From assembly GCA_965202585.1 (NCBI GenBank), contig CBDBBG010000238.1:1-64000 (forward strand): a stretch of 64,000 nucleotides of DNA. The letters are read 5' to 3'. Below are positions 1 through 64,000 of this stretch, in pieces. The position numbers were made by a program, and so were the translations under genes. Source of the DNA: Thalia democratica. Its lineage: Eukaryota. Positions within the stretch are counted from its first letter, which is position 1, and the number at the start of each line of letters is the position of its first letter. A model generated the notes under the pieces. The model made no database searches, was not told where the DNA came from, and saw only the letters and a program-made list of their open reading frames with translations.

Positions 1-190
1 GAATTGAAGTTTTTACATCTTTATTTGTTTTTTATAATTGTGTTAAATGTATCTGAATTGACATTATTATATATTAAAATTTAGGTTAAATCATTAACAG
101 AATATTAAGTTAACAAACTTTACGTCTAAAGTAAAAACTTTTATTCGGTAAACAATTAAAAAGTATGTGTTTTAGCAAAAATAAAATAAA

Positions 191-694
191 ATGGACCGAT
201 TCATTTTCGATCATGTCGAAGAATATCCTGAGCAGCAGCAAGCTGATGAACAAGCAGAACAACAGTCAGAAGATTTTGCACAATTTTTCATGCCGGTGCG
301 AAATAGAAGGCAACTCGATGCGGAAATCGCGCGAACCACTTTACGGATGCGAGCGAGAATGCAACGAACACAACATGCACGACGCATTCAGCAGCGGAGA
401 GAGAATACAACGACAAGTGGAGCAAGAAATGCAACAAGAAATTCAGCAAGAAATTATGCAGCAGAGAGGGAGTGTACCACAAGAAATGCGGCAAGAATTA
501 CAACAAGAAATGCTGGCGCGGCGCATTGTGCAGCAGAGAGAGAGAGAGAGAGAGTAGAACAAAGATTTGAAGAAGAAATACATCAGGAAATTATTAGTTT
601 ATTATATTTTATAATTCAAAACTCGCAATTAATTTGTTTTATCTTTAAAAGACAAACAGCCAATTTAAAATTAATACAAGTTAACATCTTTTAG
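191..694 (+). pseudogene. RING-less paralogue of the RING gene; open 167-aa frame but internally double-frameshifted
   Basis: N-terminus MDRFIFDHVEEYPEQQQADE aligns with MDQLNPDHVEDYAEQQQVDE, and RRI(V)QQRE modules are shared. The Q/E-rich homologous peptide is read in the +1 frame between (GA)4 at 397-404 and (AG)10 at 535-554. No RING follows. Confidence 0.6.
535..554 (+). repeat. (AG)10 microsatellite inside the paralogue ORF (same length in all five units)
   Basis: Read directly; also 14883-14902 etc. Confidence 0.95.
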
Positions 695-1004
695 TTTGTT
701 TCAAAACTTTTGTGAATTATTTCTGTCTTAAAAGTCAGTGACATAAAAATTAAAGTATAGTTAAAGTTTTTTATTTTTTTGTTATTTAAATTTAATCTTA
801 GTTTGTTGTACATGATTTATTAAGGTTTATTGTAAAAAGGAAAATAAAAACTTATGTTTTTGTTAAGGCTGTCTAAAATGGTACCAATGCATATTTTTGG
901 GTACATTGTTTGTAATTTATTAAAATAAATATTAATCGCTTTTCTGATATTTAATATATTTTGTTAAACTTTAAAATTTTAAGCTTTAACGGTTTTATCA
1001 TTTT

Positions 1005-1274
1005 TATTTAAATCTAACACACGTGTATTAAGTATTCAGTGTATACTGTTTAGTTTGTACATATAATTTTTTTTTGAATATAAAATTTAATTTGTTTGAT
1101 CTTTAGTTTTTTTGTATCAATTTGTTAAATATACTTGAGCTGTTATATTGATACATTATAGTTAAGGGTAAACTATTAAAAGAACAATATGTTATACAAA
1201 CCTTACATCTAAAGTAAAAACTTTTAGTAGGTAAAAAGTAAAAAAGTATCTTATTAAGCTGAGAATAAAACGAA
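1005..1274 (+). promoter_or_regulatory. ~270-bp upstream module of the RING gene, paralogous to 14267-14538 upstream of the RING-less gene
   Basis: Collinear blocks ATTTAAATC..ACACGT.TATTAAGT..CAGTGT, and CTAAAGTAAAAACTTTT 50-51 bp before each ATG. Regulatory function is inferred. Confidence 0.5.
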
Positions 1275-1721
1275 ATGGATCAACTCAATCCTGATCATGT
1301 CGAAGATTATGCTGAGCAGCAGCAAGTTGATGAACTGCTAGAACAATATTTCGAACCTGGTTTCGCAGTTCTACGACGTTTAATGCAACCACATATGGAA
1401 CGTGTACGACGCATTGTGCAGCAGAGAGAGCAAAAGATGATGCAACAAGAAGTACAACGTGTACGACGCATTGTGCAGCAGAGGAGAACGCAACAACCTG
1501 TTACTGGTCTGACACCCGAACGAATTGGTAGATTTGAACACTTCGCTGCAGACGAATCGTTGGTGGGCGAGCAATGCGTGGTTTGCCTCGATGACCTGAA
1601 ATGTGGCACGAGAATGGTCCGTCTGGACTGTCATGTCCCCCATTGTTTGTGCAAAACATGTACAGATGCTTGGTTTAAAGATCACAACAAATGTCCTTTA
1701 TGCAATCATGTTTTCAACTAG
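1275..1721 (+). CDS. Intronless RING-finger protein, probable E3 ubiquitin ligase (148 aa, P122 allele)
   Basis: C101-x2-C104-x14-C119-x3-H123-x2-C126-x2-C129-x10-C140-x2-C143 with W133. GLTPERIGRF segment precedes the RING. N-terminus is Q/R/E-rich. A-rich ATG context, AATAAA 57 bp after the stop, and GC content well above the flanks. Confidence 0.9.
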   Translation: MDQLNPDHVEDYAEQQQVDELLEQYFEPGFAVLRRLMQPHMERVRRIVQQREQKMMQQEVQRVRRIVQQRRTQQPVTGLTPERIGRFEHFAADESLVGEQCVVCLDDLKCGTRMVRLDCHVPHCLCKTCTDAWFKDHNKCPLCNHVFN

Positions 1722-1777
1722 AAACCGGTTTAACAGTAATATAGAATATTGGTGACAGTGCTTTTCTTGCAACAATT

Positions 1778-1783
1778 AATAAA
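1778..1783 (+). terminator. Poly(A) signal AATAAA of the RING gene (recurs in every unit)
   Basis: 57 bp after the TAG and followed by a GT/T-rich tract (TGTGAATTGTG..GTTTTGTTTTGTT). The hexamer alone is weak evidence in AT-rich DNA. Confidence 0.55.
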
Positions 1784-3131
1784 CTGTGAATTGTGAATAC
1801 GTTTTGTTTTGTTAAGTAAAATGTTATAGTTAATATAAAAGATATAAAGTATATAAAACATTAACTTCATTATTACATATGAATAACTTACTTATTTTAA
1901 CAAAAACCCATACTTATAATATAATTTTAAAAACGAACTTATTAAATATACTAAAAAATTTTGACATGTAGCACGATGAATACTTTTCTTATCAAATGTT
2001 TTAAACATTTTTTGTTTGAAAATATAAACATAGTTTAAAAACCTTGCGGTATGTAGCAATTCGTGTATTTATATGTAAAGAACTTCCAAGCTCATCCATT
2101 TTTACAATAATCTAAAACACTAGTGATCTATCTAATTTATATTTTTAAGAACTCTTTTTCATTAGGATTCACTTACTAAATAGGATTATAGGTCCAATAG
2201 ATCAATAATTTCAAGCGATCTTTAACAACTGGAATCTTAAATTATGCAACAATCATTAGAGTTACAAGAACTTATAAAAAGTTTTACAAAAATTAAATTT
2301 TAAACTACCAAAATAAAAATTAAAGTTTTTACTTTCAACTACAATAGTACTGATAATGTTTTAGTTAATAGACTAATGCTATTACAAAAAATAGAAGATC
2401 ACTAAATCTAATAATTTGTTTTATTAAAAACTATCAAATTCTTTATTACTCAAAATGCTTTAACTTTGCTATTTTACTAAAACACTGGTTCTTTTGGTAG
2501 GAACCTGTACATAAGCATTGTTCTTATCTAAACAATCATGAATAAAGTTTCAGTTTGTACTTGAATACCCAATATCTATTTAAAACTATGATTTTTCTAG
2601 TCGTTTTGTTTTCCATTTGTGACGTAAATGTATTAAAGTGAAAATATATTTAATTGTTGGATCATAGCCTACATGCTGAAAACTGCCGATCTGACACCCA
2701 GCCTATAAAGTTTTAAAAAGAACATCAACTTCACACACTTATAGTTATAAAAATTAAACATAACTCACTCATTTTCGAAAAAAGTTTATTAATCAATTTC
2801 GTTTAGCGCATGCTCAAAATAATATTGCTAAAAACTATTAATACTGTAGTGTAATTTTAGTTACATACAATGAATTTGAAAAGTCTAGCTAAAAATAGCT
2901 ACTTCATAAAGTATAAAAGTCTCTTTAGAAAAAGTTTAAAATAGAATTGAGTTATAATTAGCTAATTTGAAGTAAATTATAAGACAAAATTGCTAAAACA
3001 AAAGTATTTAAAATAGTAAATTTTTTTACCTGAAACTAAATTAAATAAAAAGCACATTACAAAATACGACAAAAACGACAACAATAATATTACTAAAAAC
3101 ACGCTATTTTTAAAGTTTTTAAATGTAATTT

Positions 3132-3615
3132 ACAATATACATGAAAATTATAACAGCTATCTGATTTGTACTATAAATTTATTTAATTTAGTCTTTATGT
3201 TTAGGAAAGCAATGAAGCGCTTTATTATGAAATGAAGTATATAATCTATTAAAAATGAAACAACAACCAATAATTAGTGAATCAATTAAGTTTATCAACG
3301 GTAAAGACAATAAAACTCACAGGAATCTTATGTAACGCGTGTTTTATATATTAAATCTTTGTAATGATAAAATCTATAAATTTAAAATTATAACAGATAA
3401 ATTTATTTTAGGTACATTTAGGAAGCTGTGACTTATATTGTCTTTACCGTTGTTAAACTTTGTTGATTTACTAATTATTGGTTGTTGTTTCATTTTTAAT
3501 ACATTATATACTACATTTCATAATAAAGCGCTTTATTGATTTCTTAACATAAAGACTAAATTAACTAACTTTATAGTACAAATTAAATAGCTGTTATAAC
3601 TTTCATATATATTGT
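3132..3615. mobile_element. Foldback/MITE-like element, ~190-bp imperfect inverted arms (3132-3322, 3426-3615) with ~103-bp spacer
   Basis: For example CAACGGTAAAGACAAT / ATTGTCTTTACCGTTG and TAAAAATGAAACAACAACCAATAATTAGT / ACTAATTATTGGTTGTTGTTTCATTTTTA. No clear TSD. Confidence 0.75.
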
Positions 3616-5461
3616 GACGAAATTATTGGACGTTTTTTGTTCAATTATTGACAACAGTAAAAAATTTGATTCATGTTTCTTTCCAATAAGGTAAGTGGTT
3701 TGTTTATATTATGATTTGTTCTTTTGTTGTGTATTTTAGTTTACTTTACTTAATCAGACTAAATAATTACGAATATTATATAATTTTATAACAATCGGAT
3801 TTAACATTAAGTATTTTACCTATTATTAACTATTAATCTGTAAAAATTTGTGGTAAGTTATTTTATTTTATTTTAATTTTAATGAAAACATGTATACACC
3901 TACTTTATTCCATGATTCTATTCTCATATTACACTAATTACTATTTACAGAACCCAGTTGAAGTGTGTTGATTAGTTAGCACACAGAAACATATGTTGGT
4001 ACAATAAAGCAAGACTATTGTATAGTAAGGTTTTAAGTATGCATTTTAATTTAGCTCAACTACTATTTGTAGTGGTATTCACTACTGTGGATTTGTTAAA
4101 GCTTCACAGTTTAGCTAATTTAGAAACAGTTTAGTTTTATAGTTGGCGGGTTGGATACTATATGCTAGCACAAGCGGCTTAAGCATTCAATATATGTAAA
4201 AAGATAATTGAGTTTGTTTTTAATATCAGATTATTTATAAAAATAAATATCAGTCACTCAAAAAAACGTTTCATCTAATCACTTTAAATATACTAAAATT
4301 ATTTCTAGTCTAAACATTAATCAAATTTAATTTCTTATAGACAGACGTTAACAGTGTTAGTTTTAAATAAAAAAGGTAATTTTAGCTCTATTTAGTCGCA
4401 ACTCTCAACTGTAAAAACCCAGAAAAAAATTGATATGATAAAAAATACAATTTTAAATGGTTGCTATAACTGTTTTATTCGTATTTATCAAAACATATAC
4501 AAGTATCCTTTGAAAGAAAAGAAAAACTGTTCTTTAGTTATTTTGTTTTAAGTTTTTTTTTACATTATTAAAAAAGTGTAATTGTTTATAACATCTATTT
4601 AGGTGATATTAACAAATCCAGAAGGGATTCATGTTAAATTAAGTATATTGTGTTGCGTAGAATATAATTTTAATGACTTTTTGTTGTTTATAGTAATATA
4701 ATTTATATGTTGAAAAAAAAAATTAAAGCGGTTTCTTTGATCAAAGCAAATTGAGTTTTATAAGTATATCCAACTTATTTCAATTTTTTTATAAATGATT
4801 TTCGTTACTTATCTAGACTCTTTCAATTGAGCTTTGTTTTACCTTAAGTTATTTTTTTCTAAATGAGCTGAAGGGGATTTGGATTAATTAAGCTTTAGCT
4901 TATTTTAGCTATTATGTTTATACTTGTTTTTTAAGTTTTAGAAACATCACCAGCATTTCCGTTTTTGTTTTAATATTTTGTTGAACCAGCCAGTAATGAA
5001 AATGATATGGGTATGAATAAAATTTGCCAAAATATCTAATTTTTCAAAACCATCTATGCCAGGAATTCTAATTTACCTGACTGGACTTTTATGTCAAATA
5101 AATCCACGTGGTTGCTTATAATGCTGATAAAATTTAAGATTATTGATTGTAATGTCTAATAAAGAATGTAAGGCTGAACTACATTAATCCCAGGCGTTTC
5201 TACATTTAAGAGACAAAGTTTAACCTTCATTTTTGTTAGACGAAATGTTTCCTTATTTGAAATTATCAACAGTATTAATATTAACCGAGAAAAAATATAC
5301 TTTAAAAAGCTTAAACTAAAAAGTTGTGATTTAAAACACACGTAAGTAAGGATATTAATGTCTTTCAAATTAATTAACAGCAAATTTATGCTTAGATATA
5401 AGACATTAGAAAGCATTGTATATGATATGCATAAATAAACCTTGTAGACCAAAACTTTGGC

Positions 5462-5491
5462 TTTCACTTTTAAATTAAACATATCTGTTAA
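5462..5491 (+). repeat. 30-bp exact direct repeat, second copy at 6009-6038
   Basis: TTTCACTTTTAAATTAAACATATCTGTTAA read at both positions. Confidence 0.9.
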
Positions 5492-5633
5492 GTTTCTGTC
5501 TAAGTGGCATAAACCTTCCACATACACTGTTCCTTAGATATACTACTTACAAAAGTATATGGTTCTCTACCATTAAGAATGCAATGTACCAACATTAGTA
5601 ACATACTTTGCACAACCATTGTTTTTCTCTATA

Positions 5634-5748
5634 AAGCCTAACGACGTTTAAATCTCAGTAAGTAATCTACTAGTGTAACTCAAACAAATAATAAACTATT
5701 CCTGTATCATTTTAGAGCCTTAAATAATTCATAGAGTAACCGGCACTG
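5634..5748 (-). mobile_element. hAT-like terminal fragment (CAGTGCCGG.. on minus strand), inverted homologue of 13063-13176
   Basis: 27-bp perfect inverted core at 5718-5744 / 13067-13093. Similarity extends ~115 bp and decays away from the CAG end. Recurs in each unit. Confidence 0.55.
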
Positions 5749-6365
5749 AAGTAATGTAAATTGAAATTAATTAAGTAATTATTTTCCAATAATGGACAAA
5801 ACATGAAAAAAAGTTAAGAACCGGTGGTTTCAAGTATAATTAAATACTAAACTAAGAATTTATTTGCAGTTTATGAGACTTGGTAACTTGAATTGATATA
5901 ACTTTTTGAATATATTTATAGAATGATACTGATAAAGTAAACTACAACGTAAAACTGTTGTGTTACTTTCAATAATTCGAATTTCTTACAGATTTATACT
6001 TTTAAACATTTCACTTTTAAATTAAACATATCTGTTAATAACACTAAAACTCTGTTCAGTCTTTACTTAAACTTGAGCTAAAAAAGAATTAAATTACTTA
6101 ACAACATGCAATAGAAACAAAACAATAAAGCTAAGGCTTGTTTGAATAATAACATAAATTAGATAGAAGACTTTTATAGGTAAACTAACTGGTATGTACA
6201 ACTAGTAAACTTGTGAGACAAAATACAATAGAATGATATTAATAAACCAAATTACAACAAGTGAAGTGTTACATATAGAATAATAAATTGATTGTTTACT
6301 CCAAAACTATACTAAATTAGAATATGTTTTTTTCAGCAGTTGATCAATGTTACAAAAACAAACAT

Positions 6366-6646
6366 TTGAACTAAAACAAAGATTAAAGGTGAAATCAAAA
6401 ATACAGCGGAGATATTTGTTGTGAACATAGCTCGAGTACTAGTACCTGCTAACTTTTTTAATTTCTAACTCTCATCATGCAAATAGATACAAGTTTGAAA
6501 GGTATTTGAAACAACCAAGTAGTTTAAAATCAAAGCTTTGAAGTTTTAAAGCTCCATTTTGCTTATTTTTTATCGTTTTTATAAAGTGTTTGGTGTTTTT
6601 TAGCATAAAATTTTCTGTCAGAAACGATGGAAATGTTTATTTTCAA
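6366..6646 (+). repeat. ~280-bp diverged internal duplication, copy A
   Basis: Collinear with 7482-7756. Exact blocks ACAAGTTTGAAAGGTATTTGAAACAAC (27 bp) and AAATCAAAGCTTTGAAGTTTTAAAG (25 bp). Confidence 0.9.
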
Positions 6647-7481
6647 GTATTTGTAAGTTAAAAAAAAAAAAGAAAAAAAAATCCAAAAAAAATTATACTT
6701 GTTTATTATCATTCAATTTTGTTGGTTAAAATTTGCATATTTTTAATGATATTGTAATTTGCTTTAAATTAATTTTGTTTTCAACTTAAGTAGCTTTAAA
6801 AAGACCATTATACTTTATTTTTACAGCTCATTACAAACTGCTTTACTCCTATAATAAGATATAAAATGTTTTCGGTTGTTAAAAGTAAATCAAAAAAAGT
6901 TTTAGAGCAAATAAATGCAAGGTATGTAAAAAATAGAAAATGTAATAAGCAAAATGAAAAAAACACAAACATTAAAAAACTTTTGGCTAAATAAGGTTAT
7001 GTTTAAAACTAAAATTTGTTACAACAACTGCATTAATTTCAACTGTGAAGTATGAAATGTAAATGTCAAAATAGGTTATGTAAAACCTAATATAGTTTTA
7101 ATGACTACATTTGGTATGGGTTTGATTTAAAAGCTAATTTTATTTGTAGAAAATATCAATATAATTTGTTCTTTAACAGTTTTTTTTTATTGATTCATTA
7201 GTTATTTTGCTATGTCTTAAACATAGTTTGTAAAGTTAAGTTAAACCTCAATGTTTTTTTAAATGATTATTAAGGTGTTTATTACTCATGATCTCATTAA
7301 AACTAGAGTGAAGTATTAATTTAAAAATAAATAAACAAGTCAATAAGTTTGTATAGTAAGTTACATAAACTTAATGTTAATCTCAAGTTTATGGTTATTA
7401 TATTAAATTAAAGTTTGAATAGAAACAATTAATTTCACTTATACATATTTTTTTAAGCAATAAATGAGCTAATATAAACCT

Positions 7482-7756
7482 TTAACTGAAACAAAAATTT
7501 TAAAGTGAAATTAAAAACATAGCAGAGATATTTGCGATGAACATAGTTTGAGTACTAATACCTGCTAACTGTTTTTAACTAATATCATGCAAATAGAAAC
7601 AAGTTTGAAAGGTATTTGAAACAACTAAGTAGTGTGAAATCAAAGCTTTGAAGTTTTAAAGATTTATTTTGCTTATTTTTCATCGTTTTTATGAAGTGTT
7701 TGGTGTTTTTTGAAGCAGAATTTTGTACTGAAAACGATGGTAAAACTTATTTTTGA
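7482..7756 (+). repeat. ~280-bp diverged internal duplication, copy B
   Basis: Collinear with 6366-6646. Confidence 0.9.
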
Positions 7757-8167
7757 AAAAAACAAGGTTTGAAAAAGTTACAGCTAAAAGTTGAAAATTA
7801 GCTTTAAACTGTCAAAGCGAGAGAAGAGAGGCCTCGTGAATGTCACCAAGTGAATTTTTTGCACAAAGTTTTTATTTATTACGTAATTATACAAAAAATC
7901 AGTTTGCAGAAATTTCTAAAAAATTGCAATTCATTTTAGAAAAGTTTTCTTGGAAGTTGTAGGTCATCAAATTTTTACTTTAACTTTCTTCACATATGTA
8001 TTTCTAGAGTTTACCTTTTATATGTTTCTTTAAGTAATAAAAGGAACTTAAAGTACAAGCACATACAATTCCAAACCAATGACATAGTATGAAAAAATCA
8101 ATAAAACTTAAAACTTGAACTGTTTATGCTTGAATAAAAAAGAAAACAAAACAAATCTACATCATCT

Positions 8168-8590
8168 TGTCAAAGTTATTTAAATCAACAGTCTTCTAGT
8201 TTATTATGATAATCAAGTGTATTATTATATTTTGTTCACAACTTCAAAGAAAAGTCTTTACCTGTATGTTGTCAAAGTTATTTAAATCAACAGTCTTCTA
8301 CTTTATTGTGATAATCATGTATTTTATTTTGTTTTTGTTCACAACTCAACAGAAAAGTCTTTACCTGTATGTTGAAAAATTGTCTTAAATCAACAGACTT
8401 CTACTTTATTCTGATAATCATGTTTTTTTTTTCTTTTTGTTCACAACTCCAATGAAAAGTCTCTACCTGTATGTTGAAAAAATGTCTTAAATCAACAGAC
8501 TTCTACTTGATTATGACAAGCATGTGTATTATTATCTTATTGTTCACAACTTTAAAGAAAAGTGTTTACCTGTATGTTGAAAAAGTGTCA
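8168..8590 (+). repeat. Minisatellite, 102-103-bp period, 4 full copies plus a partial
   Basis: Units start at 8168, 8270, 8373, 8475 and 8578. Conserved TTAAATCAACAG, TGTTCACAACT and TACCTGTATGTTG. Confidence 0.92.
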
Positions 8591-8822
8591 TTTGTTTGAT
8601 TTACTTTACATTCATAAACTCACTAAAAAGTCTTATGTTGAGCAGAAACAAAATGGCCATCTATATTCAAGTGCTAGATCAATCATCTTTCTAAATCTTA
8701 ATCAATACTCAAATACTGCTAACTATTTTGGTGAACCAAGTCATTTCTTGGACTATTGCAGCTCTAAGTGAGGTTAGTTTTTTGTTAATTAAGATAGATA
8801 AATTTAATGCAAGATTATTTTT

Positions 8823-9082
8823 CAGGGTTGCCAAGCACCTAATGTTTCAGTATACTCAGGTGTTTTCTCAATTTTAAATACTTAAAAATTACTTGTTTAA
8901 TTAAATTTTATTTGTAAACATAGAACATCATTAATATAATTTGGTGCTCAAACTCAATTGATATCAAGTAAATGTAAAGTACATAATGCATTAACAGCTT
9001 CTGCTGCCTAGTTTCTAATTATATTTAAATTATGCTGAATTTCACAAGAGTACAGTTTTTGAATTAAAGACTGGCAACCCTG
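8823..9082. mobile_element. 260-bp hAT-type MITE
   Basis: Perfect 11-bp TIRs CAGGGTTGCCA / TGGCAACCCTG. The 8-bp flanks TTATTTTT and GTATTCAT match at only 5/8 (eroded TSD). No coding capacity. Confidence 0.75.
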
Positions 9083-9953
9083 GTATTCATATTGTTATTA
9101 ATTTTTTAAGTAAATGTTTTATTATTATGTTTTTATCCACTAGTCAATTAAAGCAATAGTGTAAAATTTTTCTTTATAAGTGACATATTTCATTATATAT
9201 AAACATATAAGAACACAAACAACATTTAGACAGCATGATCAACTGACTGGTGCTTAGTTGGTGTTTTTGTATGTTTATATAACTAAGTTAGATAAAATTC
9301 TGGTTTGTTTCAGTTAGTTGTAGTGATTATAATTAAAAGTGGTAATAAAATTCAATGTTTAAATATACTATAAGATTGATAATCATTAAGTGGTTATTAT
9401 AGTTGACAGAATTGTGATAAATGAACTGTAACTAGCTGACAAAACCAGACTGTTGCCTGACTATATATGATGTTTGTAAAAAGACTATGTTGTATAGACA
9501 TGATAGACTTAATTTTGAGGAACACTAATAATACTTCAAAATAGTCTTTGTCTGGAATTTCTATTGTGACATTATAAACTAACATAGGTGTTTATTTTAT
9601 CTCAAACTTGATACTATGTATTGTGCAGCATTATTTCCAAGTGTTTTTTAGTAGTTTCATCATTCATACTAGTAGATAGTGTCACAGTAAAGACTCAAAA
9701 CAAAGAATATTTTGATAATTAATAAAAGTTTGTTTTTTATACAGTACACAAGAATGTTAACTATTTTATTTAAACAAACTCTGTCAAAAACTGTATAAAA
9801 AATAAAATCACTAATATTCCTTTTGAATATTTTATAACATTGTGTAGTAACTCAAGTGGTACTGTATTTTATTGGTTAAACAATATAGTTTTAGACAGTG
9901 ATTGTTTAAATTTAAATATGTTAGTAATTAGACAAGGTAAGTTAAGCCATATT

Positions 9954-10156
9954 TTAAGTGGATCGGCTGCAGTTGTAAGGCTTTGTATAATAACATTATG
10001 AGGTGAAGTGATAATACAGCTTAGTATTAAAAACAATTACCAAATTACATAAAAATAAAATGAGAAACAAGTTTTATTACTTCAAACTTAAAATCAGTAA
10101 AACTGTAATATATTAGCCAATCAGAAGCGACGTTATAACTGCAGCCGGACCTTAGA
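9954..10156. mobile_element. ~200-bp degenerate MITE with TTAA-like flanks (Kolobok-like, tentative)
   Basis: Inverted repeat CGGCTGCAGTTGTAA (9964-9978) / TTATAACTGCAGCCG (10133-10147), 14/15 match. TTAA on the left, TAGA on the right. Confidence 0.5.
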
Positions 10157-10572
10157 GCTACTTAAGATGTAAGTAGTTAACAGATTTTGAACAAAAAATA
10201 ATTTGTTATTGACATGAAGCTAGTATGGTTTAGTTAGTAAGAATGTATTTCTATAAGGTACGCGGTTTAAGAAGAACGCACTCGCATAGGTACGCACTAA
10301 ATTATTAAGGCCCCCACACAAAATTTCACAAAATGGGGGAATCCCCTAAAGTGAAAATCGAACGGGAATTTTTTGAGATTAATAATTAAAATTATTTTTT
10401 AAGGCATTTCGCCGGCTCCGCCGGCGAAAAATTTTTCACTTTTACTCCCAACCATTTTTTCTTGAAAACCTAATTACGCTTGGAGCCCAGTTAGTAAGCC
10501 TGACAGCCAAACCAGATAAAAGTGTGGTACTGAGCTCTAAGAAGTAGTTCGGTTTTGAGTTAAAGTGGTAGC

Positions 10573-10675
10573 GGACAGCTTTCGTTATTTGTGCATAAGT
10601 CCCTCCCGCTGCGAGCTGCTCCTATCGGAGCAGCTCTTGCTCCCGGGACTTTTGCACAAATAACGAAAGCCGTCC
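10573..10675. other. 103-nt GC-rich fold-back (31-bp outer stem, 10-bp inner stem, TATC loop)
   Basis: 10573-10603 pairs with 10645-10675 (29/31). GAGCTGCTCC-TATC-GGAGCAGCTC at 10613-10636. Confidence 0.85.
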
Positions 10676-10835
10676 TTTAGGCCGCGTCCTTATGCTGGTC
10701 GGCACCTAATTAGTTTTTTGTTTGATGTACGAGTAGTTACGCACCTTCTTTAGTATGTTATATTTCTTTTATCATGTGGTTTTATATACATGTAAGTATC
10801 GAGATGCATGTTTAATAAAAAAATAACTGATTTAC

Positions 10836-14254: not shown

Positions 14255-14266
14255 GTGTAACATTCT

Positions 14267-51866: not shown

Positions 51867-52126
51867 CAGGGTTGCCAAGCACCTAATGTTTCAGTATACT
51901 CAGGTGTTTTCTCAATTTTAAATACTTAAAAATTACTTGTTTAATTAAATTTTATTTGTAAACATAGAACATCATTAATATAATTTGGTGCTCAAACTCA
52001 ATTGATATCAAGTAAATGTAAAGTACATAATGCATTAACAGCTTCTGCTGCCTAGTTTCTAATTATATTTAAATTATGCTGAATTTCACAAGAGTACAGT
52101 TTTTGAATTAAAGACTGGCAACCCTG
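51867..52126. mobile_element. hAT-type MITE, unit 4
   Basis: Copy of 8823-9082. Confidence 0.75.
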
Positions 52127-52997: not shown

Positions 52998-53200
52998 TTA
53001 AGTGGATCGGCTGCAGTTGTAAGGCTTTGTATAATAACATTATGAGGTGAAGTGATAATACAGCTTAGTATTAAAAACAATTACCAAATTACATAAAAAT
53101 AAAATGAGAAACAAGTTTTATTACTTCAAACTTAAAATCAGTAAAACTGTAATATATTAGCCAATCAGAAGCGACGTTATAACTGCAGCCGGACCTTAGA
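52998..53200. mobile_element. Degenerate MITE, unit 4
   Basis: Copy of 9954-10156. Confidence 0.5.
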
Positions 53201-53616
53201 GCTACTTAAGATGTAAGTAGTTAACAGATTTTGAACAAAAAATAATTTGTTATTGACATGAAGCTAGTATGGTTTAGTTAGTAAGAATGTATTTCTATAA
53301 GGTACGCGGTTTAAGAAGAACGCACTCGCATAGGTACGCACTAAATTATTAAGGCCCCCACACAAAATTTCACAAAATGGGGGAATCCCCTAAAGTGAAA
53401 ATCGAACGGGAATTTTTTGAGATTAATAATTAAAATTATTTTTTAAGGCATTTCGCCGGCTCCGCCGGCGAAAAATTTTTCACTTTTACTCCCAACCATT
53501 TTTTCTTGAAAACCTAATTACGCTTGGAGCCCAGTTAGTAAGCCTGACAGCCAAACCAGATAAAAGTGTGGTACTGAGCTCTAAGAAGTAGTTCGGTTTT
53601 GAGTTAAAGTGGTAGC

Positions 53617-53719
53617 GGACAGCTTTCGTTATTTGTGCATAAGTCCCTCCCGCTGCGAGCTGCTCCTATCGGAGCAGCTCTTGCTCCCGGGACTTTTGCA
53701 CAAATAACGAAAGCCGTCC
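53617..53719. other. 103-nt fold-back, unit 4
   Basis: Copy of 10573-10675. Confidence 0.85.
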
Positions 53720-56700
53720 TTTAGGCCGCGTCCTTATGCTGGTCGGCACCTAATTAGTTTTTTGTTTGATGTACGAGTAGTTACGCACCTTCTTTAGTAT
53801 GTTATATTTCTTTTATCATGTGGTTTTATATACATGTAAGTATCGAGATGCATGTTTAATAAAAAAATAACTGATTTACAGTAAAGTTTTATGTTTTATA
53901 GTATGTATCCATGGTGTCTTACTACAAATTAAACAGTTTTGTAGTGGACAGTCTGGCATTATTCTATAGTAAACACTTCAACTTACATTGTAATCTTATT
54001 TATCGGTATCATTTCATTGTTAGTTATGGGACTACTTTAGTTTATTCACAGTTAGACAAAACAATTTATACAACTTGTTATTATTAATTTAATTATATGG
54101 ATTTGTTAGAAAGTAAATATTTTCGTGTTGTCTCCTTTCTTTTTTTTTTATTAAAAATATTTATGTCTTAATTTGTATAAACTAGTTTTGGCCATCTTTG
54201 AAAATTACACACTAACGAAATACAGTTTTTGTCCACAACTTTTCAACTAATTTACAGTTTTCAATTATTACGTCATCCGGTAGTCTCATGCAGTTTAAAC
54301 TTCGTAATTTTTGCTGCATAATATGTATTTGATTATAAATTATAAAGTAATGTTCTAAATATATAGTCTATATTTTCAATTTAAGTAGTGCAAATTTTAT
54401 AACGTTAACACTAATTATATGTACATATTAAGTATTGGATAAGGTGTATCTTAATTAAACTAATACTTATAAATATATATGGCAATTAACTCTTAAATAA
54501 TATATTGCTGCGTATAACTTAAACTAATATTAAAGTTACAATTAACTCCTAATCATTAATCATTATCTTGTTGCGCTGGATTATATGATTATTTCTAGTT
54601 TTATGTCTTAAACACTGTATGTATTCATCTATAAATTAAAAAGATTGAATTTTTTCTTTTAAGTAATAATTACAGTTCAAATATACATCCCATTTAGAGG
54701 CTTTATGAGTTTTAAAAGGTCAAATTCAACCATTGTATAAAACTTTATTTACCATTAAGCGTGTTAAACTAAAAAAAATCATGCCAGTTACTAGCTCTGT
54801 ACTTTTGATAGTATAGATCAAATACCGTTACGCCAACTAACTCTTATTTTGAGGTTATTACATTTAGTAACTAAGTACTTTTAACAAAAATTTTTACAAT
54901 TCAAGTAGTTAATTTAGTTAAAAAAAAGTATTGGTATAGAATATTACAAAATTGTGGGATTAGTTCTCAATTATGTCTTAATCGTGATTAAACATACCTT
55001 ATTCTAACAATATTGATATCAGATGCAACTTTGTAATTTAGTTGGTAGTTCATTATTTTGTTCGTGTTGTTGTAAAGTTAATTAAAAGTTTGTTTGATAA
55101 ATATTCTCTCTCGTTTCTCTACAATTAATAGCCTTTTTTTATATTTCTATAACGTTATTGCATTTCTATTTTGTTCTTTCGTTACTTAATTCTACTTCTG
55201 GCTCAATACAGTCAATTTTTACTATTTTATTATCAGTCATCATCATGTTGCTCTGGTTTGTATGATTATTTCTTTATGTCTTAAACAATACTTATTTAAA
55301 ACCTTTTAGTAATGATTACACTTGAAATATGCTTTTTATTAAAATTTAAAGGTCAAATCTGTTAAATTGTTCAATGGTTATACATGACTTTTTTAACACT
55401 GATTTTGTAACTTAATCTAAAAATAATTAATTTTTAAAAGATAGCCTGCTTAACTTAAGTTTTTTTTTTCTATTTTTATAAATATTCAATCCAGAAGCTA
55501 CTTTAGTTTTTAGGTCACTAGTTTTGTCACCTTTTACAGTAGTGTTGTAGTGCCATTTAGCAGTTAAATATATATTCATTCTCTTATAATACTTTGCTGA
55601 AATTAAACTTATATTAAAATAACTAACAATTCTTAACATTCAATCCTATATATCATCTTGTTGCCCTGTTTTACATGATTATTTCCAATGGTATGTCTTA
55701 AAAAGTTTATGTTCAAATAGTAAAGATTAAAATGTTCAATTGGAGTCTAGGAAATTTCGGTCTTTAACTACCTACAACTCAACCTAATACAAACGTGTTT
55801 ATTATATTTGTATATTTAATAAAATAATTTTTAAACAGTACTCTTTCTTTAGTTTTGCATGTTTTAAAGCGCTTCTACTTAGTTTAAACTTTTTTTGTTA
55901 ACATATCTAAATTACAAGTAAAGTTTTATGTTTTATAGTATGTATCCTGGCTGTCTTACTACAAATGATTCAGTTTTGTAGTAAACAGTCTGGTATTATT
56001 CTATAATAAACACTCCGCTTACTGTAATTTAATATTATAACTTATTGTCCCATTACGAGGGGATAGCACCTGCAGACTTGTTGAAAGCCGTGTTAGTGCC
56101 GTAACCAGCGCCGGTTACTCTATGAATTATTTAAGGAATTCAAATAATACAGGATCGTTTCCTATAACTTTGAGGTACTTGAGTAAATTACTTACTGAGG
56201 TATAAGTGATTTTAGGCTTGAAATTCTACACTAAAGTTTTTCGTTTACATAAATAAGTATTTCAGTCTTAATTTGTATAACAAAGTTAGGAAATCTTTTA
56301 AATTATTGTCCACAATTTTCAAAGTAATTTTGTAATATTTTATATTTTCCCCATTTACAATTATTACGTCATCACCCAGTAGTCTAACACAGTATAAACT
56401 TAGTAATTTTTACTTACACTTTAGTTGTATATGGATGTTATCTTTTTGATTATAAATTATTAAATTTGTTTCAAATCGCTCTATATTTCAAAGTTTGGTA
56501 AAGCAACTTGTATGTTAATGAATAAGAATAATTGTATGTAAGTAATAAGTATTGGATAAGGTGTATCTTAATTAAACTAACAGAAACAAATTATATGGTA
56601 ATTAGCTCTTAAATATTTTACTGCTGCGTATAAATGAATCTAATTTTTTGAATTACAATCAACTCTTGATAATACCTAATCATTAATTATCATATTGTTG

Positions 56701-57581
56701 CGCTGGTTTAATTATTGTTTATAGTTTTATATCACAAACAATTATTTAACTATAAATTTAAAAGTTTAAACTGTTTCTTACAAGTAATAATTACAGTTCA
56801 ATTAAACATCCCATTTAAAGCTTTCGTGTGTATAAAGGCTTCTTTTGAATTTAACCATAATATATAACTTTTTCAAAAACTGCGTGTCAAAATAAACAAT
56901 AGTTGGTACCAGCTCTGTACTTTTGATAAATTAAATCAAATACTGACTAAGTACCATTTTTTACGGTGTGCATTTTGTACATGTTGTGTTAAGTTAAATG
57001 ATAAAAAGGAAAATACAAACTTTCATATTGTTAAAGTTATATAAAATAGATATCCGTTCAAACTTTTTAATACATTGTTTGTATTATATTAAAGTAAATA
57101 TTAATTGATATTCAACTATTTAATAAACTCAATTAAATTTGTAAAAATTACAAGCTATAATGCTTTCATCATTTGAAATTACAAATACCACTAGAATTCA
57201 GAAAGACATAAATTTGAAAACTGTAAAATTTGAAGATATAATGCTTTCACCATTTTAATTTACAAATACCACTAGAATTTATAAAGAAGATACTTGAGTG
57301 TAACATTCTTATTTAAATCAAAGACACGTTTATTAAGTTATCAGTGTTAACAGTTTAGTTGGTATGTATACCCTTTTTTCATCGAATTATAGAATTGAAG
57401 TTTTTACATCTTTATTTGTTTTTTATAATTGTGTTAAATGTATCTGAATTGACATTATTATATATTAAAATTTAGGTTAAATCATTAACAGAATATTAAG
57501 TTAACAAACTTTACGTCTAAAGTAAAAACTTTTATTCGGTAAACAATTAAAAAGTATGTGTTTTAGCAAAAATAAAATAAA

Positions 57582-58085
57582 ATGGACCGATTCATTTTCG
57601 ATCATGTCGAAGAATATCCTGAGCAGCAGCAAGCTGATGAACAAGCAGAACAACAGTCAGAAGATTTTGCACAATTTTTCATGCCGGTGCGAAATAGAAG
57701 GCAACTCGATGCGGAAATCGCGCGAACCACTTTACGGATGCGAGCGAGAATGCAACGAACACAACATGCACGACGCATTCAGCAGCGGAGAGAGAATACA
57801 ACGACAAGTGGAGCAAGAAATGCAACAAGAAATTCAGCAAGAAATTATGCAGCAGAGAGGGAGTGTACCACAAGAAATGCGGCAAGAATTACAACAAGAA
57901 ATGCTGGCGCGGCGCATTGTGCAGCAGAGAGAGAGAGAGAGAGAGTAGAACAAAGATTTGAAGAAGAAATACATCAGGAAATTATTAGTTTATTATATTT
58001 TATAATTCAAAACTCGCAATTAATTTGTTTTATCTTTAAAAGACAAACAGCCAATTTAAAATTAATACAAGTTAACATCTTTTAG
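57582..58085 (+). pseudogene. RING-less paralogue copy 5
   Basis: Same translation as 191-694. Confidence 0.6.
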
Positions 58086-58665
58086 TTTGTTTCAAAACTT
58101 TTGTGAATTATTTCTGTCTTAAAAGTCAGTGACATAAAAATTAAAGTATAGTTAAAGTTTTTTATTTTTTTGTTATTTAAATTTAATCTTAGTTTGTTGT
58201 ACATGATTTATTAAGGTTTATTGTAAAAAGGAAAATAAAAACTTATGTTTTTGTTAAGGCTGTCTAAAATGGTACCAATGCATATTTTTGGGTACATTGT
58301 TTGTAATTTATTAAAATAAATATTAATCGCTTTTCTGATATTTAATATATTTTGTTAAACTTTAAAATTTTAAGCTTTAACGGTTTTATCATTTTTATTT
58401 AAATCTAACACACGTGTATTAAGTATTCAGTGTATACTGTTTAGTTTGTACATATAATTTTTTTTTGAATATAAAATTTAATTTGTTTGATCTTTAGTTT
58501 TTTTGTATCAATTTGTTAAATATACTTGAGCTGTTATATTGATACATTATAGTTAAGGGTAAACTATTAAAAGAACAATATGTTATACAAACCTTACATC
58601 TAAAGTAAAAACTTTTAGTAGGTAAAAAGTAAAAAAGTATCTTATTAAGCTGAGAATAAAACGAA

Positions 58666-59112
58666 ATGGATCAACTCAATCCTGATCATGTCGAAGATTA
58701 TGCTGAGCAGCAGCAAGTTGATGAACTGCTAGAACAATATTTCGAACCTGGTTTCGCAGTTCTACGACGTTTAATGCAACCACATATGGAACGTGTACGA
58801 CGCATTGTGCAGCAGAGAGAGCAAAAGATGATGCAACAAGAAGTACAACGTGTACGACGCATTGTGCAGCAGAGGAGAACGCAACAACCTGTTACTGGTC
58901 TGACACCCGAACGAATTGGTAGATTTGAACACTTCGCTGCAGACGAATCGTTGGTGGGCGAGCAATGCGTGGTTTGCCTCGATGACCTGAAATGTGGCAC
59001 GAGAATGGTCCGTCTGGACTGTCATGTCACCCATTGTTTGTGCAAAACATGTACAGATGCTTGGTTTAAAGATCACAACAAATGTCCTTTATGCAATCAT
59101 GTTTTCAACTAG
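58666..59112 (+). CDS. RING-finger protein copy 5 (T122)
   Basis: As copy 3; A at 59029. Confidence 0.9.
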   Translation: MDQLNPDHVEDYAEQQQVDELLEQYFEPGFAVLRRLMQPHMERVRRIVQQREQKMMQQEVQRVRRIVQQRRTQQPVTGLTPERIGRFEHFAADESLVGEQCVVCLDDLKCGTRMVRLDCHVTHCLCKTCTDAWFKDHNKCPLCNHVFN

Positions 59113-60522
59113 AAACCGGTTTAACAGTAATATAGAATATTGGTGACAGTGCTTTTCTTGCAACAATTAATAAACTGTGAATTGTGAATACGTTTTGTTT
59201 TGTTAAGTAAAATGTTATAGTTAATATAAAAGATATAAAGTATATAAAACATTAACTTCATTATTACATATGAATAACTTACTTATTTTAACAAAAACCC
59301 ATACTTATAATATAATTTTAAAAACGAACTTATTAAATATACTAAAAAATTTTGACATGTAGCACGATGAATACTTTTCTTATCAAATGTTTTAAACATT
59401 TTTTGTTTGAAAATATAAACATAGTTTAAAAACCTTGCGGTATGTAGCAATTCGTGTATTTATATGTAAAGAACTTCCAAGCTCATCCATTTTTACAATA
59501 ATCTAAAACACTAGTGATCTATCTAATTTATATTTTTAAGAACTCTTTTTCATTAGGATTCACTTACTAAATAGGATTATAGGTCCAATAGATCAATAAT
59601 TTCAAGCGATCTTTAACAACTGGAATCTTAAATTATGCAACAATCATTAGAGTTACAAGAACTTATAAAAAGTTTTACAAAAATTAAATTTTAAACTACC
59701 AAAATAAAAATTAAAGTTTTTACTTTCAACTACAATAGTACTGATAATGTTTTAGTTAATAGACTAATGCTATTACAAAAAATAGAAGATCACTAAATCT
59801 AATAATTTGTTTTATTAAAAACTATCAAATTCTTTATTACTCAAAATGCTTTAACTTTGCTATTTTACTAAAACACTGGTTCTTTTGGTAGGAACCTGTA
59901 CATAAGCATTGTTCTTATCTAAACAATCATGAATAAAGTTTCAGTTTGTACTTGAATACCCAATATCTATTTAAAACTATGATTTTTCTAGTCGTTTTGT
60001 TTTCCATTTGTGACGTAAATGTATTAAAGTGAAAATATATTTAATTGTTGGATCATAGCCTACATGCTGAAAACTGCCGATCTGACACCCAGCCTATAAA
60101 GTTTTAAAAAGAACATCAACTTCACACACTTATAGTTATAAAAATTAAACATAACTCACTCATTTTCGAAAAAAGTTTATTAATCAATTTCGTTTAGCGC
60201 ATGCTCAAAATAATATTGCTAAAAACTATTAATACTGTAGTGTAATTTTAGTTACATACAATGAATTTGAAAAGTCTAGCTAAAAATAGCTACTTCATAA
60301 AGTATAAAAGTCTCTTTAGAAAAAGTTTAAAATAGAATTGAGTTATAATTAGCTAATTTGAAGTAAATTATAAGACAAAATTGCTAAAACAAAAGTATTT
60401 AAAATAGTAAATTTTTTTACCTGAAACTAAATTAAATAAAAAGCACATTACAAAATACGACAAAAACGACAACAATAATATTACTAAAAACACGCTATTT
60501 TTAAAGTTTTTAAATGTAATTT

Positions 60523-61006
60523 ACAATATACATGAAAATTATAACAGCTATCTGATTTGTACTATAAATTTATTTAATTTAGTCTTTATGTTTAGGAAAG
60601 CAATGAAGCGCTTTATTATGAAATGAAGTATATAATCTATTAAAAATGAAACAACAACCAATAATTAGTGAATCAATTAAGTTTATCAACGGTAAAGACA
60701 ATAAAACTCACAGGAATCTTATGTAACGCGTGTTTTATATATTAAATCTTTGTAATGATAAAATCTATAAATTTAAAATTATAACAGATAAATTTATTTT
60801 AGGTACATTTAGGAAGCTGTGACTTATATTGTCTTTACCGTTGTTAAACTTTGTTGATTTACTAATTATTGGTTGTTGTTTCATTTTTAATACATTATAT
60901 ACTACATTTCATAATAAAGCGCTTTATTGATTTCTTAACATAAAGACTAAATTAACTAACTTTATAGTACAAATTAAATAGCTGTTATAACTTTCATATA
61001 TATTGT
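60523..61006. mobile_element. Foldback/MITE-like element, unit 5
   Basis: Copy of 3132-3615. Confidence 0.75.
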
Positions 61007-64000
61007 GACGAAATTATTGGACGTTTTTTGTTCAATTATTGACAACAGTAAAAAATTTGATTCATGTTTCTTTCCAATAAGGTAAGTGGTTTGTTTATAT
61101 TATGATTTGTTCTTTTGTTGTGTATTTTAGTTTACTTTACTTAATCAGACTAAATAATTACGAATATTATATAATTTTATAACAATCGGATTTAACATTA
61201 AGTATTTTACCTATTATTAACTATTAATCTGTAAAAATTTGTGGTAAGTTATTTTATTTTATTTTAATTTTAATGAAAACATGTATACACCTACTTTATT
61301 CCATGATTCTATTCTCATATTACACTAATTACTATTTACAGAACCCAGTTGAAGTGTGTTGATTAGTTAGCACACAGAAACATATGTTGGTACAATAAAG
61401 CAAGACTATTGTATAGTAAGGTTTTAAGTATGCATTTTAATTTAGCTCAACTACTATTTGTAGTGGTATTCACTACTGTGGATTTGTTAAAGCTTCACAG
61501 TTTAGCTAATTTAGAAACAGTTTAGTTTTATAGTTGGCGGGTTGGATACTATATGCTAGCACAAGCGGCTTAAGCATTCAATATATGTAAAAAGATAATT
61601 GAGTTTGTTTTTAATATCAGATTATTTATAAAAATAAATATCAGTCACTCAAAAAAACGTTTCATCTAATCACTTTAAATATACTAAAATTATTTCTAGT
61701 CTAAACATTAATCAAATTTAATTTCTTATAGACAGACGTTAACAGTGTTAGTTTTAAATAAAAAAGGTAATTTTAGCTCTATTTAGTCGCAACTCTCAAC
61801 TGTAAAAACCCAGAAAAAAATTGATATGATAAAAAATACAATTTTAAATGGTTGCTATAACTGTTTTATTCGTATTTATCAAAACATATACAAGTATCCT
61901 TTGAAAGAAAAGAAAAACTGTTCTTTAGTTATTTTGTTTTAAGTTTTTTTTTACATTATTAAAAAAGTGTAATTGTTTATAACATCTATTTAGGTGATAT
62001 TAACAAATCCAGAAGGGATTCATGTTAAATTAAGTATATTGTGTTGCGTAGAATATAATTTTAATGACTTTTTGTTGTTTATAGTAATATAATTTATATG
62101 TTGAAAAAAAAAATTAAAGCGGTTTCTTTGATCAAAGCAAATTGAGTTTTATAAGTATATCCAACTTATTTCAATTTTTTTATAAATGATTTTCGTTACT
62201 TATCTAGACTCTTTCAATTGAGCTTTGTTTTACCTTAAGTTATTTTTTTCTAAATGAGCTGAAGGGGATTTGGATTAATTAAGCTTTAGCTTATTTTAGC
62301 TATTATGTTTATACTTGTTTTTTAAGTTTTAGAAACATCACCAGCATTTCCGTTTTTGTTTTAATATTTTGTTGAACCAGCCAGTAATGAAAATGATATG
62401 GGTATGAATAAAATTTGCCAAAATATCTAATTTTTCAAAACCATCTATGCCAGGAATTCTAATTTACCTGACTGGACTTTTATGTCAAATAAATCCACGT
62501 GGTTGCTTATAATGCTGATAAAATTTAAGATTATTGATTGTAATGTCTAATAAAGAATGTAAGGCTGAACTACATTAATCCCAGGCGTTTCTACATTTAA
62601 GAGACAAAGTTTAACCTTCATTTTTGTTAGACGAAATGTTTCCTTATTTGAAATTATCAACAGTATTAATATTAACCGAGAAAAAATATACTTTAAAAAG
62701 CTTAAACTAAAAAGTTGTGATTTAAAACACACGTAAGTAAGGATATTAATGTCTTTCAAATTAATTAACAGCAAATTTATGCTTAGATATAAGACATTAG
62801 AAAGCATTGTATATGATATGCATAAATAAACCTTGTAGACCAAAACTTTGGCTTTCACTTTTAAATTAAACATATCTGTTAAGTTTCTGTCTAAGTGGCA
62901 TAAACCTTCCACATACACTGTTCCTTAGATATACTACTTACAAAAGTATATGGTTCTCTACCATTAAGAATGCAATGTACCAACATTAGTAACATACTTT
63001 GCACAACCATTGTTTTTCTCTATAAAGCCTAACGACGTTTAAATCTCAGTAAGTAATCTACTAGTGTAACTCAAACAAATAATAAACTATTCCTGTATCA
63101 TTTTAGAGCCTTAAATAATTCATAGAGTAACCGGCACTGAAGTAATGTAAATTGAAATTAATTAAGTAATTATTTTCCAATAATGGACAAAACATGAAAA
63201 AAAGTTAAGAACCGGTGGTTTCAAGTATAATTAAATACTAAACTAAGAATTTATTTGCAGTTTATGAGACTTGGTAACTTGAATTGATATAACTTTTTGA
63301 ATATATTTATAGAATGATACTGATAAAGTAAACTACAACGTAAAACTGTTGTGTTACTTTCAATAATTCGAATTTCTTACAGATTTATACTTTTAAACAT
63401 TTCACTTTTAAATTAAACATATCTGTTAATAACACTAAAACTCTGTTCAGTCTTTACTTAAACTTGAGCTAAAAAAGAATTAAATTACTTAACAACATGC
63501 AATAGAAACAAAACAATAAAGCTAAGGCTTGTTTGAATAATAACATAAATTAGATAGAAGACTTTTATAGGTAAACTAACTGGTATGTACAACTAGTAAA
63601 CTTGTGAGACAAAATACAATAGAATGATATTAATAAACCAAATTACAACAAGTGAAGTGTTACATATAGAATAATAAATTGATTGTTTACTCCAAAACTA
63701 TACTAAATTAGAATATGTTTTTTTCAGCAGTTGATCAATGTTACAAAAACAAACATTTGAACTAAAACAAAGATTAAAGGTGAAATCAAAAATACAGCGG
63801 AGATATTTGTTGTGAACATAGCTCGAGTACTAGTACCTGCTAACTTTTTTAATTTCTAACTCTCATCATGCAAATAGATACAAGTTTGAAAGGTATTTGA
63901 AACAACCAAGTAGTTTAAAATCAAAGCTTTGAAGTTTTAAAGCTCCATTTTGCTTATTTTTTATCGTTTTTATAAAGTGTTTGGTGTTTTTTAGCATAAA

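Follow-up and report, generated by a model that had tools for sequence, protein, structure and literature searches.

D4Z4/DUX4 and TSPY (DYZ5) are gene-bearing macrosatellites whose biology depends on array size, and arrays of this kind have, to our knowledge, been studied closely in humans but scarcely in invertebrates. In the RS447 array, which is expressed, the unit of about 4.7 kb consists mostly of the gene and is present in 20 to more than 100 copies. According to parts of two published sources, the RS447 megasatellite of humans carries USP17 (DUB-3) deubiquitinase genes and varies in copy number between individuals (PMC2874809, PMC5687341). The array described here resembles RS447, as far as those parts describe it, in its head-to-tail, kilobase-sized units with one intronless ubiquitin-system ORF each, and differs from it in a 14.3-kb unit that is 97% non-coding, in coding for a candidate RING ligase instead of a deubiquitinase, and in a copy number that is roughly inferred. 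With D4Z4/DUX4 and TSPY (DYZ5) it shares the presence of one ORF per unit and a high identity within the array; those arrays, however, are old, occur in conserved form in primates or mammals and are subject to known chromatin regulation, whereas the present array appears to have formed long after samples of the animal diverged. A literature search for a macrosatellite carrying a RING ligase returned nothing relevant.

The locus probably arose when unequal crossing-over recently amplified a segment with a working RING gene aboard, and the amplification is best regarded as a neutral or not-yet-tested copy-number variant and not as an established dosage adaptation. The finding alone demonstrates no new mechanism. 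Its interest lies in an array caught almost at birth, with a constrained gene and with copies 0.03% apart while versions of the locus elsewhere differ by 1-5%, and in a RING family (at least 96 clusters, with no named member in the collections searched) that is worth describing.

Repeat units and their RING genes

The window (the whole 64-kb stretch of DNA that was analysed, with zero N bases) had been described in a sequence-only reading as a gene-bearing macrosatellite of at least 4.46 near-identical, head-to-tail units of 14.3 kb, each with one intact RING ORF provided with a start context and a poly(A) signal. All of this was borne out by the analysis. Self-megablast and a period scan have revealed a period of exactly 14,348 bp and 4.46 head-to-tail copies, with a megablast identity between units of 99.965-99.985% (about 99.97%), so that both the unit length (1 kb or more) and the identity are those of a macrosatellite, and one complete 148-aa ORF was found in each of the five units (Table 1). 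The window lies wholly within the array, and the 4.46 copies are therefore a lower bound for an array of at least 64 kb. Because of the length and identity of the units, the repeat is not attributable to chance. Nine variant sites were found among the unit copies (eight substitutions plus the loss of 1 bp from an A-run), a divergence of 0.03%, and several of these variants are common to neighbouring units, such as position 1638, which reads C, C, A, A and A across the units.

Table 1. Positions in the window of the repeat units, the RING genes and other features of the unit.
Feature	Position	Strand	Description	Basis
Repeat unit 1	1..14348	+	Reference unit, 14,348 bp	Self-megablast and period scan
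Repeat unit 2	14349..28696	+	4 mismatches vs unit 1	Megablast and variant comparison of copies
Repeat unit 3	28697..43044	+		Megablast and variant comparison of copies
Repeat unit 4	43045..57391	+	14,347 bp; 1-bp deletion in A-run at unit position 12572	
Repeat unit 5	57392..64000	+	Partial, 6,609 bp, cut by window end	Megablast
RING gene, copy 1	1275..1721	+	148 aa, Pro122	ORF, Pfam zf-RING_2, model
RING gene, copy 2	15623..16069	+	Pro122	Intact 148-aa ORF
RING gene, copy 3	29971..30417	+	Thr122	Intact 148-aa ORF
RING gene, copy 4	44319..44765	+	Thr122	Intact 148-aa ORF
RING gene, copy 5	58666..59112	+	Thr122	Intact 148-aa ORF
Conserved upstream block	1145..1274	+	About 130 nt; candidate promoter or 5' leader; recurs in each unit	
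Poly(A) signal	1778..1783	+	AATAAA, 57 nt past the RING ORF stop; recurs in each unit	
Truncated paralogue	135..694	+	Frameshifted, RING-less; recurs in each unit	About 76% identity to the 5' part of the gene
Foldback element	3132..3615	.	Inverted arms 89-91% complementary; very high-copy dispersed repeats on flanks	
Minisatellite	8164..8589	+	102 bp, 4 copies, inside each unit	
GC-rich island	10120..10740	.	Non-coding, strongly structured, once per unit	

The RING gene contains no intron, its start codon is preceded by an A at -3 and followed by a G at +4, and both start and stop are common to the paralogues. The poly(A) signal persists, exactly or almost exactly, in all four sequences compared; it reads AATAAA in two paralogues and AATACA in a third. 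In the alignment of four paralogues, column identity in the upstream block averages 80%, and long stretches of it are invariant. Since the paralogues share start and stop, the RING half is constrained and the flanks are conserved, the ORF is read as genuine, and this comparative evidence supports its status as a bona fide gene. The P122T change, one of the nine variants, is non-synonymous and located in the RING loop; it fits neutral drift, a single change being too little for a test.

The RING gene accounts for 3% of the unit, which is otherwise non-coding, AT-rich (26% GC) and repeat-laden. The other coding-looking segments had been reported as decayed, and indeed the sole one recognized is the truncated, frameshifted paralogue, which retains the upstream block of the family and the part coding for the N-terminus, has a (GA)n tract at its end and gave no Pfam match. 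Among the 88 other open frames of at least 38 aa in the unit no Pfam family was found beyond chance, the weak scores being those for DltX and bPH_9 in one frame each (E about 0.008). A mitochondrial or other organelle concatemer, suggested by the unit length and the low GC content, was rejected because ARAGORN detected zero tRNA genes and Rfam gave nothing at E values up to 0.1. The unit also holds older local duplications of 76-90% identity (two copies each of the RING cassette, of a 2.1-kb segment and of a 1.1-kb segment, and four of the 102-bp repeat), which would represent earlier rounds of duplication.

The RING protein and its family

The predicted protein consists of a long N-terminal helix (67 residues, 6-72) and a C-terminal RING with C3HC4 spacing (residues 101-143). 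An HMM search of the 148-aa protein, called for in the sequence-only reading together with a dN/dS comparison against paralogues, gave a match to Pfam zf-RING_2 (PF13639) at residues 100-144, scoring 31.2 bits where the gathering cut-off is 27.3, with an E value of 2.8e-7. The eight ligands of a cross-brace are present with the spacing C101-x2-C104-x14-C119-x3-H123-x2-C126-x2-C129-x10-C140-x2-C143, assigned after alignment to RLIM. Across 29 family members 7 of the 8 ligands are invariant and C140 is nearly so; 21 columns are invariant, the zinc ligands among them, and the N-terminus is highly variable. The AF2 model has a mean pLDDT of 89, reaching 94-95 in the RING part, and its top Foldseek match is the RING of RNF12 (TM 0.90, rmsd 1.0 A, 69 alignment columns), followed by RNF13, RMR1, RNF38 and RNF165, so that the predicted model has a RING fold. 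A family profile run against solved structures finds RNF4, RLIM and RNF165, the best match being the RNF4 RING (E 1.1e-9). The Val/Ile two positions after the first Cys, the Trp four positions after the sixth ligand and the Pro after the seventh are kept, positions known for E2 contact from the c-Cbl-UbcH7 and RNF38-UbcH5B structures. On these grounds the protein is a candidate RING-type E3 ligase that would act in E2-dependent ubiquitin transfer.

Compared with the named C-terminal RING ligases RLIM/RNF12, RNF38, RNF165/Arkadia and RNF13, the predicted model matches in fold (TM 0.74-0.90), and as in these the RING is placed at the extreme C-terminus, after a motif of the 'GLT..RI' type that can be aligned with RLIM, whereas sequence identity is 22-31% and confined to the RING. 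In this protein Cys serves as the fifth ligand (C3HC4, three residues separating the third Cys from the His), a place taken by His in RLIM, RNF38, RNF165 and RNF13 (RING-H2). In this clade an Asn follows the last Cys, in contrast to the 'linchpin' Arg of the named ligases, and the remainder of the protein, a single predicted helix of 67 residues, is without counterpart in RLIM, RNF38, RNF165 or RNF13. Like the SUMO-targeted ligases of RNF4 type, the protein is small, has its RING at the C-terminal end and carries a conserved aromatic residue close to the C-terminus, here the invariant Phe147. RNF4-type ligases have SUMO-interaction motifs N-terminal to the RING, but by inspection none was seen in residues 1-77 of this protein, a region predicted as one helix from residue 6 to 72.

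The dN/dS values against paralogues (NG86) were 0.09-0.21 for the RING half and 0.5-0.8 for the N-terminal half; pairs with the paralogues L003 and L004 were left out, as their C-termini are of unequal length and the ungapped alignment was out of register. The RING half is therefore not evolving neutrally, and these sequence comparisons indicate that it is under purifying selection. Clustered at 90% identity, the family has at least 96 clusters, all of them unnamed metagenome proteins that, in the collections searched, come solely from marine metagenomes; a cut at 50% identity (E up to 1e-10) gives 167 representatives. The family, which is without annotation, may have undergone a lineage-specific expansion. 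No members were found in JGI metagenome contigs, and no relatives of the RING protein in IMG/VR viral contigs. With this last result, and with no Pfam match beyond chance in the 88 frames, the derivation of the unit from a transposon or a virus was rejected. Kinship with the viral RING clusters that are nearest in the protein atlas was rejected as well, scores of 0.90-0.92 and under 170 features in common being taken as generic RING likeness.

Age, copy number and origin of the array

Copy number was estimated from summed Logan contig depths. In sample X2 (organism A), contigs that exactly match unit-specific parts have a k-mer depth of 512-906, even over non-coding stretches, and diverged related contigs have a depth of 49-104. 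The same locus was found with about 1-5% divergence in sample X5 (organism B) and in the marine metagenome X3, at depths of 43-91 and 6-27, respectively; the depth of dispersed repeats is about the same in X2 as in X5. By these depths the source sample would have about 10-18 copy equivalents and another sample 1-2, a rough figure whose baseline is two diverged contigs. On the copy-number comparison proposed in the sequence-only reading, contig depth points to a difference between samples (512-906 for the exact contigs in X2, 43-91 for their homologues in X5, the overall depth being similar), and copy number may differ between them, but the baseline is uncertain. Samples X1 and X2 may be the source sample of the assembly itself and give no independent support for the tandem arrangement.

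The amplification is read as very young: divergence among the copies is 0.03%, against 1-5% for versions of the locus found in other samples. In the reading that we favour, a 14.3-kb segment has undergone a very young tandem segmental amplification, most likely through unequal crossing-over or replication slippage, each unit carrying one complete gene for a small, presumably soluble, putative RING E3 ligase of a large lineage-specific family together with a dead 5' fragment of a paralogue. The fast-evolving N-terminal helix probably pairs the protein or binds a target, and the conserved C-terminal RING would recruit the E2~ubiquitin conjugate, as the RINGs of RNF12, RNF38 and Arkadia do. The gene was presumably functional at the time of the amplification, and the array would multiply its dose provided that transcription of the copies takes place.

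The array may play a part in dosage, and it might be an adaptive, dosage-amplified set of E3-ligase genes (for example in the germline, immunity or genetic conflict) with the variable helix in target recognition, although we consider this unlikely. A constrained gene with paralogue-conserved flanks, intact in all five copies, is the pattern that a dosage benefit would also give; purifying selection acts on the RING half and the N-terminal half changes fast, the family is both large and lineage-specific, and copy number seems to vary between samples, as in known dosage arrays. The sequence-only reading had offered a dosage-amplified array as one possibility and a gene that is a passenger of a recent expansion by unequal crossing-over as the other, the latter being the one favoured here. 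To take the RING ORF, as the only intact gene of the unit, for a sign of dosage selection is not supported: intactness of all copies is uninformative on selection, because a divergence of only 0.03% has left no time for decay. Moreover, the N-terminal dN/dS of 0.5-0.8 does not exceed 1, the gene is a small part of a unit whose remainder is non-coding repeat, and no RNA run carrying array sequence was found in the run search.

It is improbable that the locus is a gene-derived satellite in the making, with copies already silent and bound to decay. A dead RING-less cassette does lie directly upstream of the full gene in each unit, but the full gene shows no defect in any copy and its lineage has been constrained up to the divergence from the closest paralogues. 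An assembly artefact or extrachromosomal circle, in which a concatemer had been made of a 14.3-kb sequence that is in fact single-copy or circular, would agree with nearly identical units and a window that never leaves the array, but is very unlikely given the eight inter-unit substitutions in a structured pattern that a concatemer of one molecule would lack, the exact contigs that in X2 are about 10 times or more deeper than their diverged relatives, the lack of any tRNA, rRNA or Rfam match, which argues against an organelle genome, and the lack of a replication or mobility gene, of Pfam matches outside the RING ORF and of relatives in viral contigs.

A bolder extension, to which we give little credence, would make the array an expressed, copy-number-variable dose amplifier from an undescribed, fast-diversifying helix-plus-RING family that repeatedly seeds arrays, with the helix recognizing targets in an arms race against viruses, transposons or drive elements; the structured non-coding cassette present once per unit might then promote or mark macrosatellite formation. 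The GC-rich island contains a near-perfect hairpin of 105 nt (10573-10675). It belongs to no Rfam family, the sole Rfam matches being miRNA-like ones far under the gathering score (25 against 98 bits), which were rejected, and no copy of the hairpin was found in JGI metagenome contigs. The bins adjoining the foldback element reach a summed contig depth of 1e4 to 5e5.

The tandem array

A period scan of the window gave a single sharp peak at 14,348 bp, and a megablast comparison of the first unit with the window revealed five copies in head-to-tail order, with starts at 1, 14349, 28697, 43045 and 57392, the fifth being truncated by the window end. The inter-unit identity was 99.965-99.985% with one 1-bp gap, as expected from the near-identical 14.3-kb units claimed in the sequence-only reading. 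At the sequence level the array is real. Only nine variable sites were found among the copies in the multiple alignment, of which eight are substitutions and the ninth is a deletion within an A-run. Several variant states were common to adjacent units, such as unit position 1638, which is C, C, A, A and A across the units and distinguishes copies of the RING gene with P122 from those with T122. The window has a G+C content of 26% and contains no N. As to known kinds, the array corresponds to the gene-bearing macrosatellites and the gene to the RING E3 ligases.

Features of the 14,348-bp unit (unit positions refer to the first unit, window 1-14348)
Feature	Unit position	Window position	Strand	Remarks
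Cassette, partial second copy of the 5' part of the RING gene	~135-694		+	~76% identical to the 5' region of the gene; also stands out from the 24-26% G+C background
RING gene	1275-1721		+	Stands out from a 24-26% G+C background
Dispersed repeats, very high copy	2801-3200; 3601-4200	17149-17548; 17949-18548; also 13349-13748
Foldback, 480 bp	3132-3615			Flanked by dispersed high-copy repeats
Inverted arms, ~115 nt	5634-5748; 13063-13176
Minisatellite, 102 bp	8164-8589			Four copies per unit, 83-86% identity
Non-coding G+C-rich island	~10120-10740	+14348 per unit		Once per unit, up to 53% G+C; also stands out from the 24-26% G+C background
Hairpin within the island, 105 nt	10573-10675			Near-perfect, z -9.0

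The RING gene, its family and the predicted protein

The 148-aa RING open reading frame was found intact five times in the window, the ATG having A at -3 and G at +4, and with AATAAA located 57 nt 3' of the stop, so that the intact frame, start context and poly(A) signal proposed earlier for each unit were recovered. In four paralogues, the ~130 nt 5' of the ATG were 80% conserved with long invariant blocks, and AATAAA was present in three of them, the fourth having AATACA. This conservation of the flanks indicates that the family expanded through duplication of DNA together with its control regions and not through retroposition. The relatives are single open reading frames with identical start and end residues, which supports a gene without introns.

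The open reading frame passed Pfam zf-RING_2. Among 5.8 billion proteins the single sequence retrieved 28 relatives and the family profile 96, all of them unnamed and from marine metagenome assemblies in ENA, including Tara Oceans; no relatives of the family were found in viral contigs. When the C-terminal 74 residues were compared with 50%-identity representatives, 167 proteins were obtained at E values up to 1e-10, nearly all with a length of 70-290 aa and the domain at the extreme C-terminus. In the family alignment the last 72 residues were strongly conserved (21 columns, the zinc ligands among them, are invariant), and the N-terminal half was Gln/Glu/Arg-rich and hardly alignable. Nei-Gojobori dN/dS values, calculated with DNA from five metagenome contigs, were 0.09-0.21 for the RING half in all pairs in correct register and 0.52 and 0.77 for the N-terminal half. 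The gene is genuine and constrained, and the RING family to which it belongs is unnamed.

Synonymous divergence between the first copy of the gene and members carried by two metagenome contigs was uneven, with dS values of 0.08 (N-terminal half) and 0.52 (RING half) against L002:130-579, and of 0.23 and 0.26, respectively, against L001:478-942 (L001a). Such a mosaic points to recombination or gene conversion between paralogues. The 5.6-kb Tara Oceans contig L001 carries two diverged, opposed members about 4 kb apart, at 478-942 (+) and 5014-5651 (-), indicating that clusters of family members exist outside tandem arrays as well.

With the family alignment as input, AlphaFold2 predicted, at a mean pLDDT of 89, a single helix (residues 6-72), a short linker and the RING (78-148). 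The best structural match was the RNF12/RLIM RING (TM 0.90, rmsd 1.0 A), followed by the RING domains of RNF13, plant RMR1, RNF38 and RNF165, and the closest solved relatives by sequence profile were RNF4, RLIM and RNF165/Arkadia. The zinc-ligand spacing is C3HC4, with three residues from the third Cys to the His. V103, W133 and P141, at the E2-contact positions usual in RING-E2 complexes such as c-Cbl-UbcH7 and RNF38-UbcH5B-Ub, were each invariant or nearly so in the family alignment, and the 'linchpin' residue that follows the last Cys is Asn in the clade of the gene and Arg in more distant members. An RNF4-type ligase was set aside because no SUMO-interaction motif was seen by eye in the N-terminal part. 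We infer a soluble E3 whose helix would pair the protein or bind a target, and whose RING would activate the E2~ubiquitin conjugate.

Copy number, age and interpretation of the array

Depth was taken from Logan contigs of four sequencing runs, with coded sample names, over window positions 13349-19348. In run X2 (organism A), contigs exactly matching unit-specific, mostly non-coding stretches had k-mer depths of 906, 756, 512, 648 and 629, and a contig with three differences from the unit had a depth of 759. Two listed diverged relatives had depths of 49 and 104, so that in this run the unit is roughly 10-18 times as deep as its least abundant relatives, with a baseline of two contigs and summed depths that are crude. 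The even depth across non-coding parts looks like DNA and not RNA. X2 is probably the source sample of the assembly and may not be independent of it. The multi-copy state of the array is supported by contig depth.

In run X5 (organism B), the corresponding stretches appeared as contigs 2-4% different with depths of 43-91, and the dispersed high-copy repeats of the unit had 1.1-1.8 times their X2 depth, so that the overall sequencing depth of both runs is similar. Versions of the locus 1-5% different were found in X3, a marine metagenome, and with those of X5 they indicate that the locus occurs in nature with ordinary levels of divergence. Compared with this, the 0.03% within the array implies that the amplification, or the last homogenisation, is some 50-100 times younger. 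Short contigs identical to the unit were also found in X8, a run labelled as another organism (C), at a depth of 2-5 (window 13507-13663, 14513-14771, 15191-15341 and 16591-16741), and could be trace DNA of the animal, as prey, associate or contamination, in the library of another organism.

We favour, as moderately probable, a recent amplification that is neutral or as yet untested and carries a working gene. Selection of the array for dosage appears rather unlikely: the intactness of all copies is no evidence for it because copies only 0.03% apart say nothing about selection on the array, and against dosage stand the N-terminal dN/dS below 1, the small share of the gene in the unit (3%) and the fact that no RNA run was found carrying the sequence. 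A satellite precursor with copies already silent is quite improbable, and an artefact or a circle is the least credible reading.

Other components of the unit

One unit contains 95 stop-to-stop frames of at least 38 aa, and a Pfam scan of the 88 located outside the gene gave just two matches, both at chance level, with no recognisable transposase, polymerase, capsid or other gene remnant. The cassette has the upstream block and the first residues as in the gene, followed by a frameshift, a (GA)n end and no RING, and its degree of identity marks it as an old, dead partial duplicate. Both results bear out the earlier view that every other coding-looking segment is decayed. A mitochondrial genome present as a concatemer, considered because of the 14.3-kb AT-rich unit, was rejected since no tRNA was found in the window and Rfam gave no match at E values up to 0.1.

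X2 (depth 232) and X5 (depth 91) both contained contigs in which the cassette end is joined to the gene's RING half (window 14943 to 15834, unit 595 to 1486), with 13-32 other letters between. They indicate that a full-length paralogue with a cassette-type N-terminus exists elsewhere, the cassette of the unit being a truncated copy of it.

The island folded much more stably than its shuffles, with z values of -8.0 (+ strand) and -6.9 (- strand), and matched no Rfam family. Older local duplications with 76-90% identity (a 2.1-kb and a 1.1-kb segment, twice each, and the 102-bp repeat four times) indicate that several rounds of tandem duplication preceded the amplification of the 14.3-kb unit. 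The dispersed repeats reached summed contig depths of 1e4 to 5e5 in X2 and X5, versus about 1e3 for unit-specific parts. The inverted arms, 73-88% complementary and 7.3 kb apart with no open reading frame between them, may represent a small element present twice in opposed orientation, or else the termini of a non-autonomous DNA transposon.
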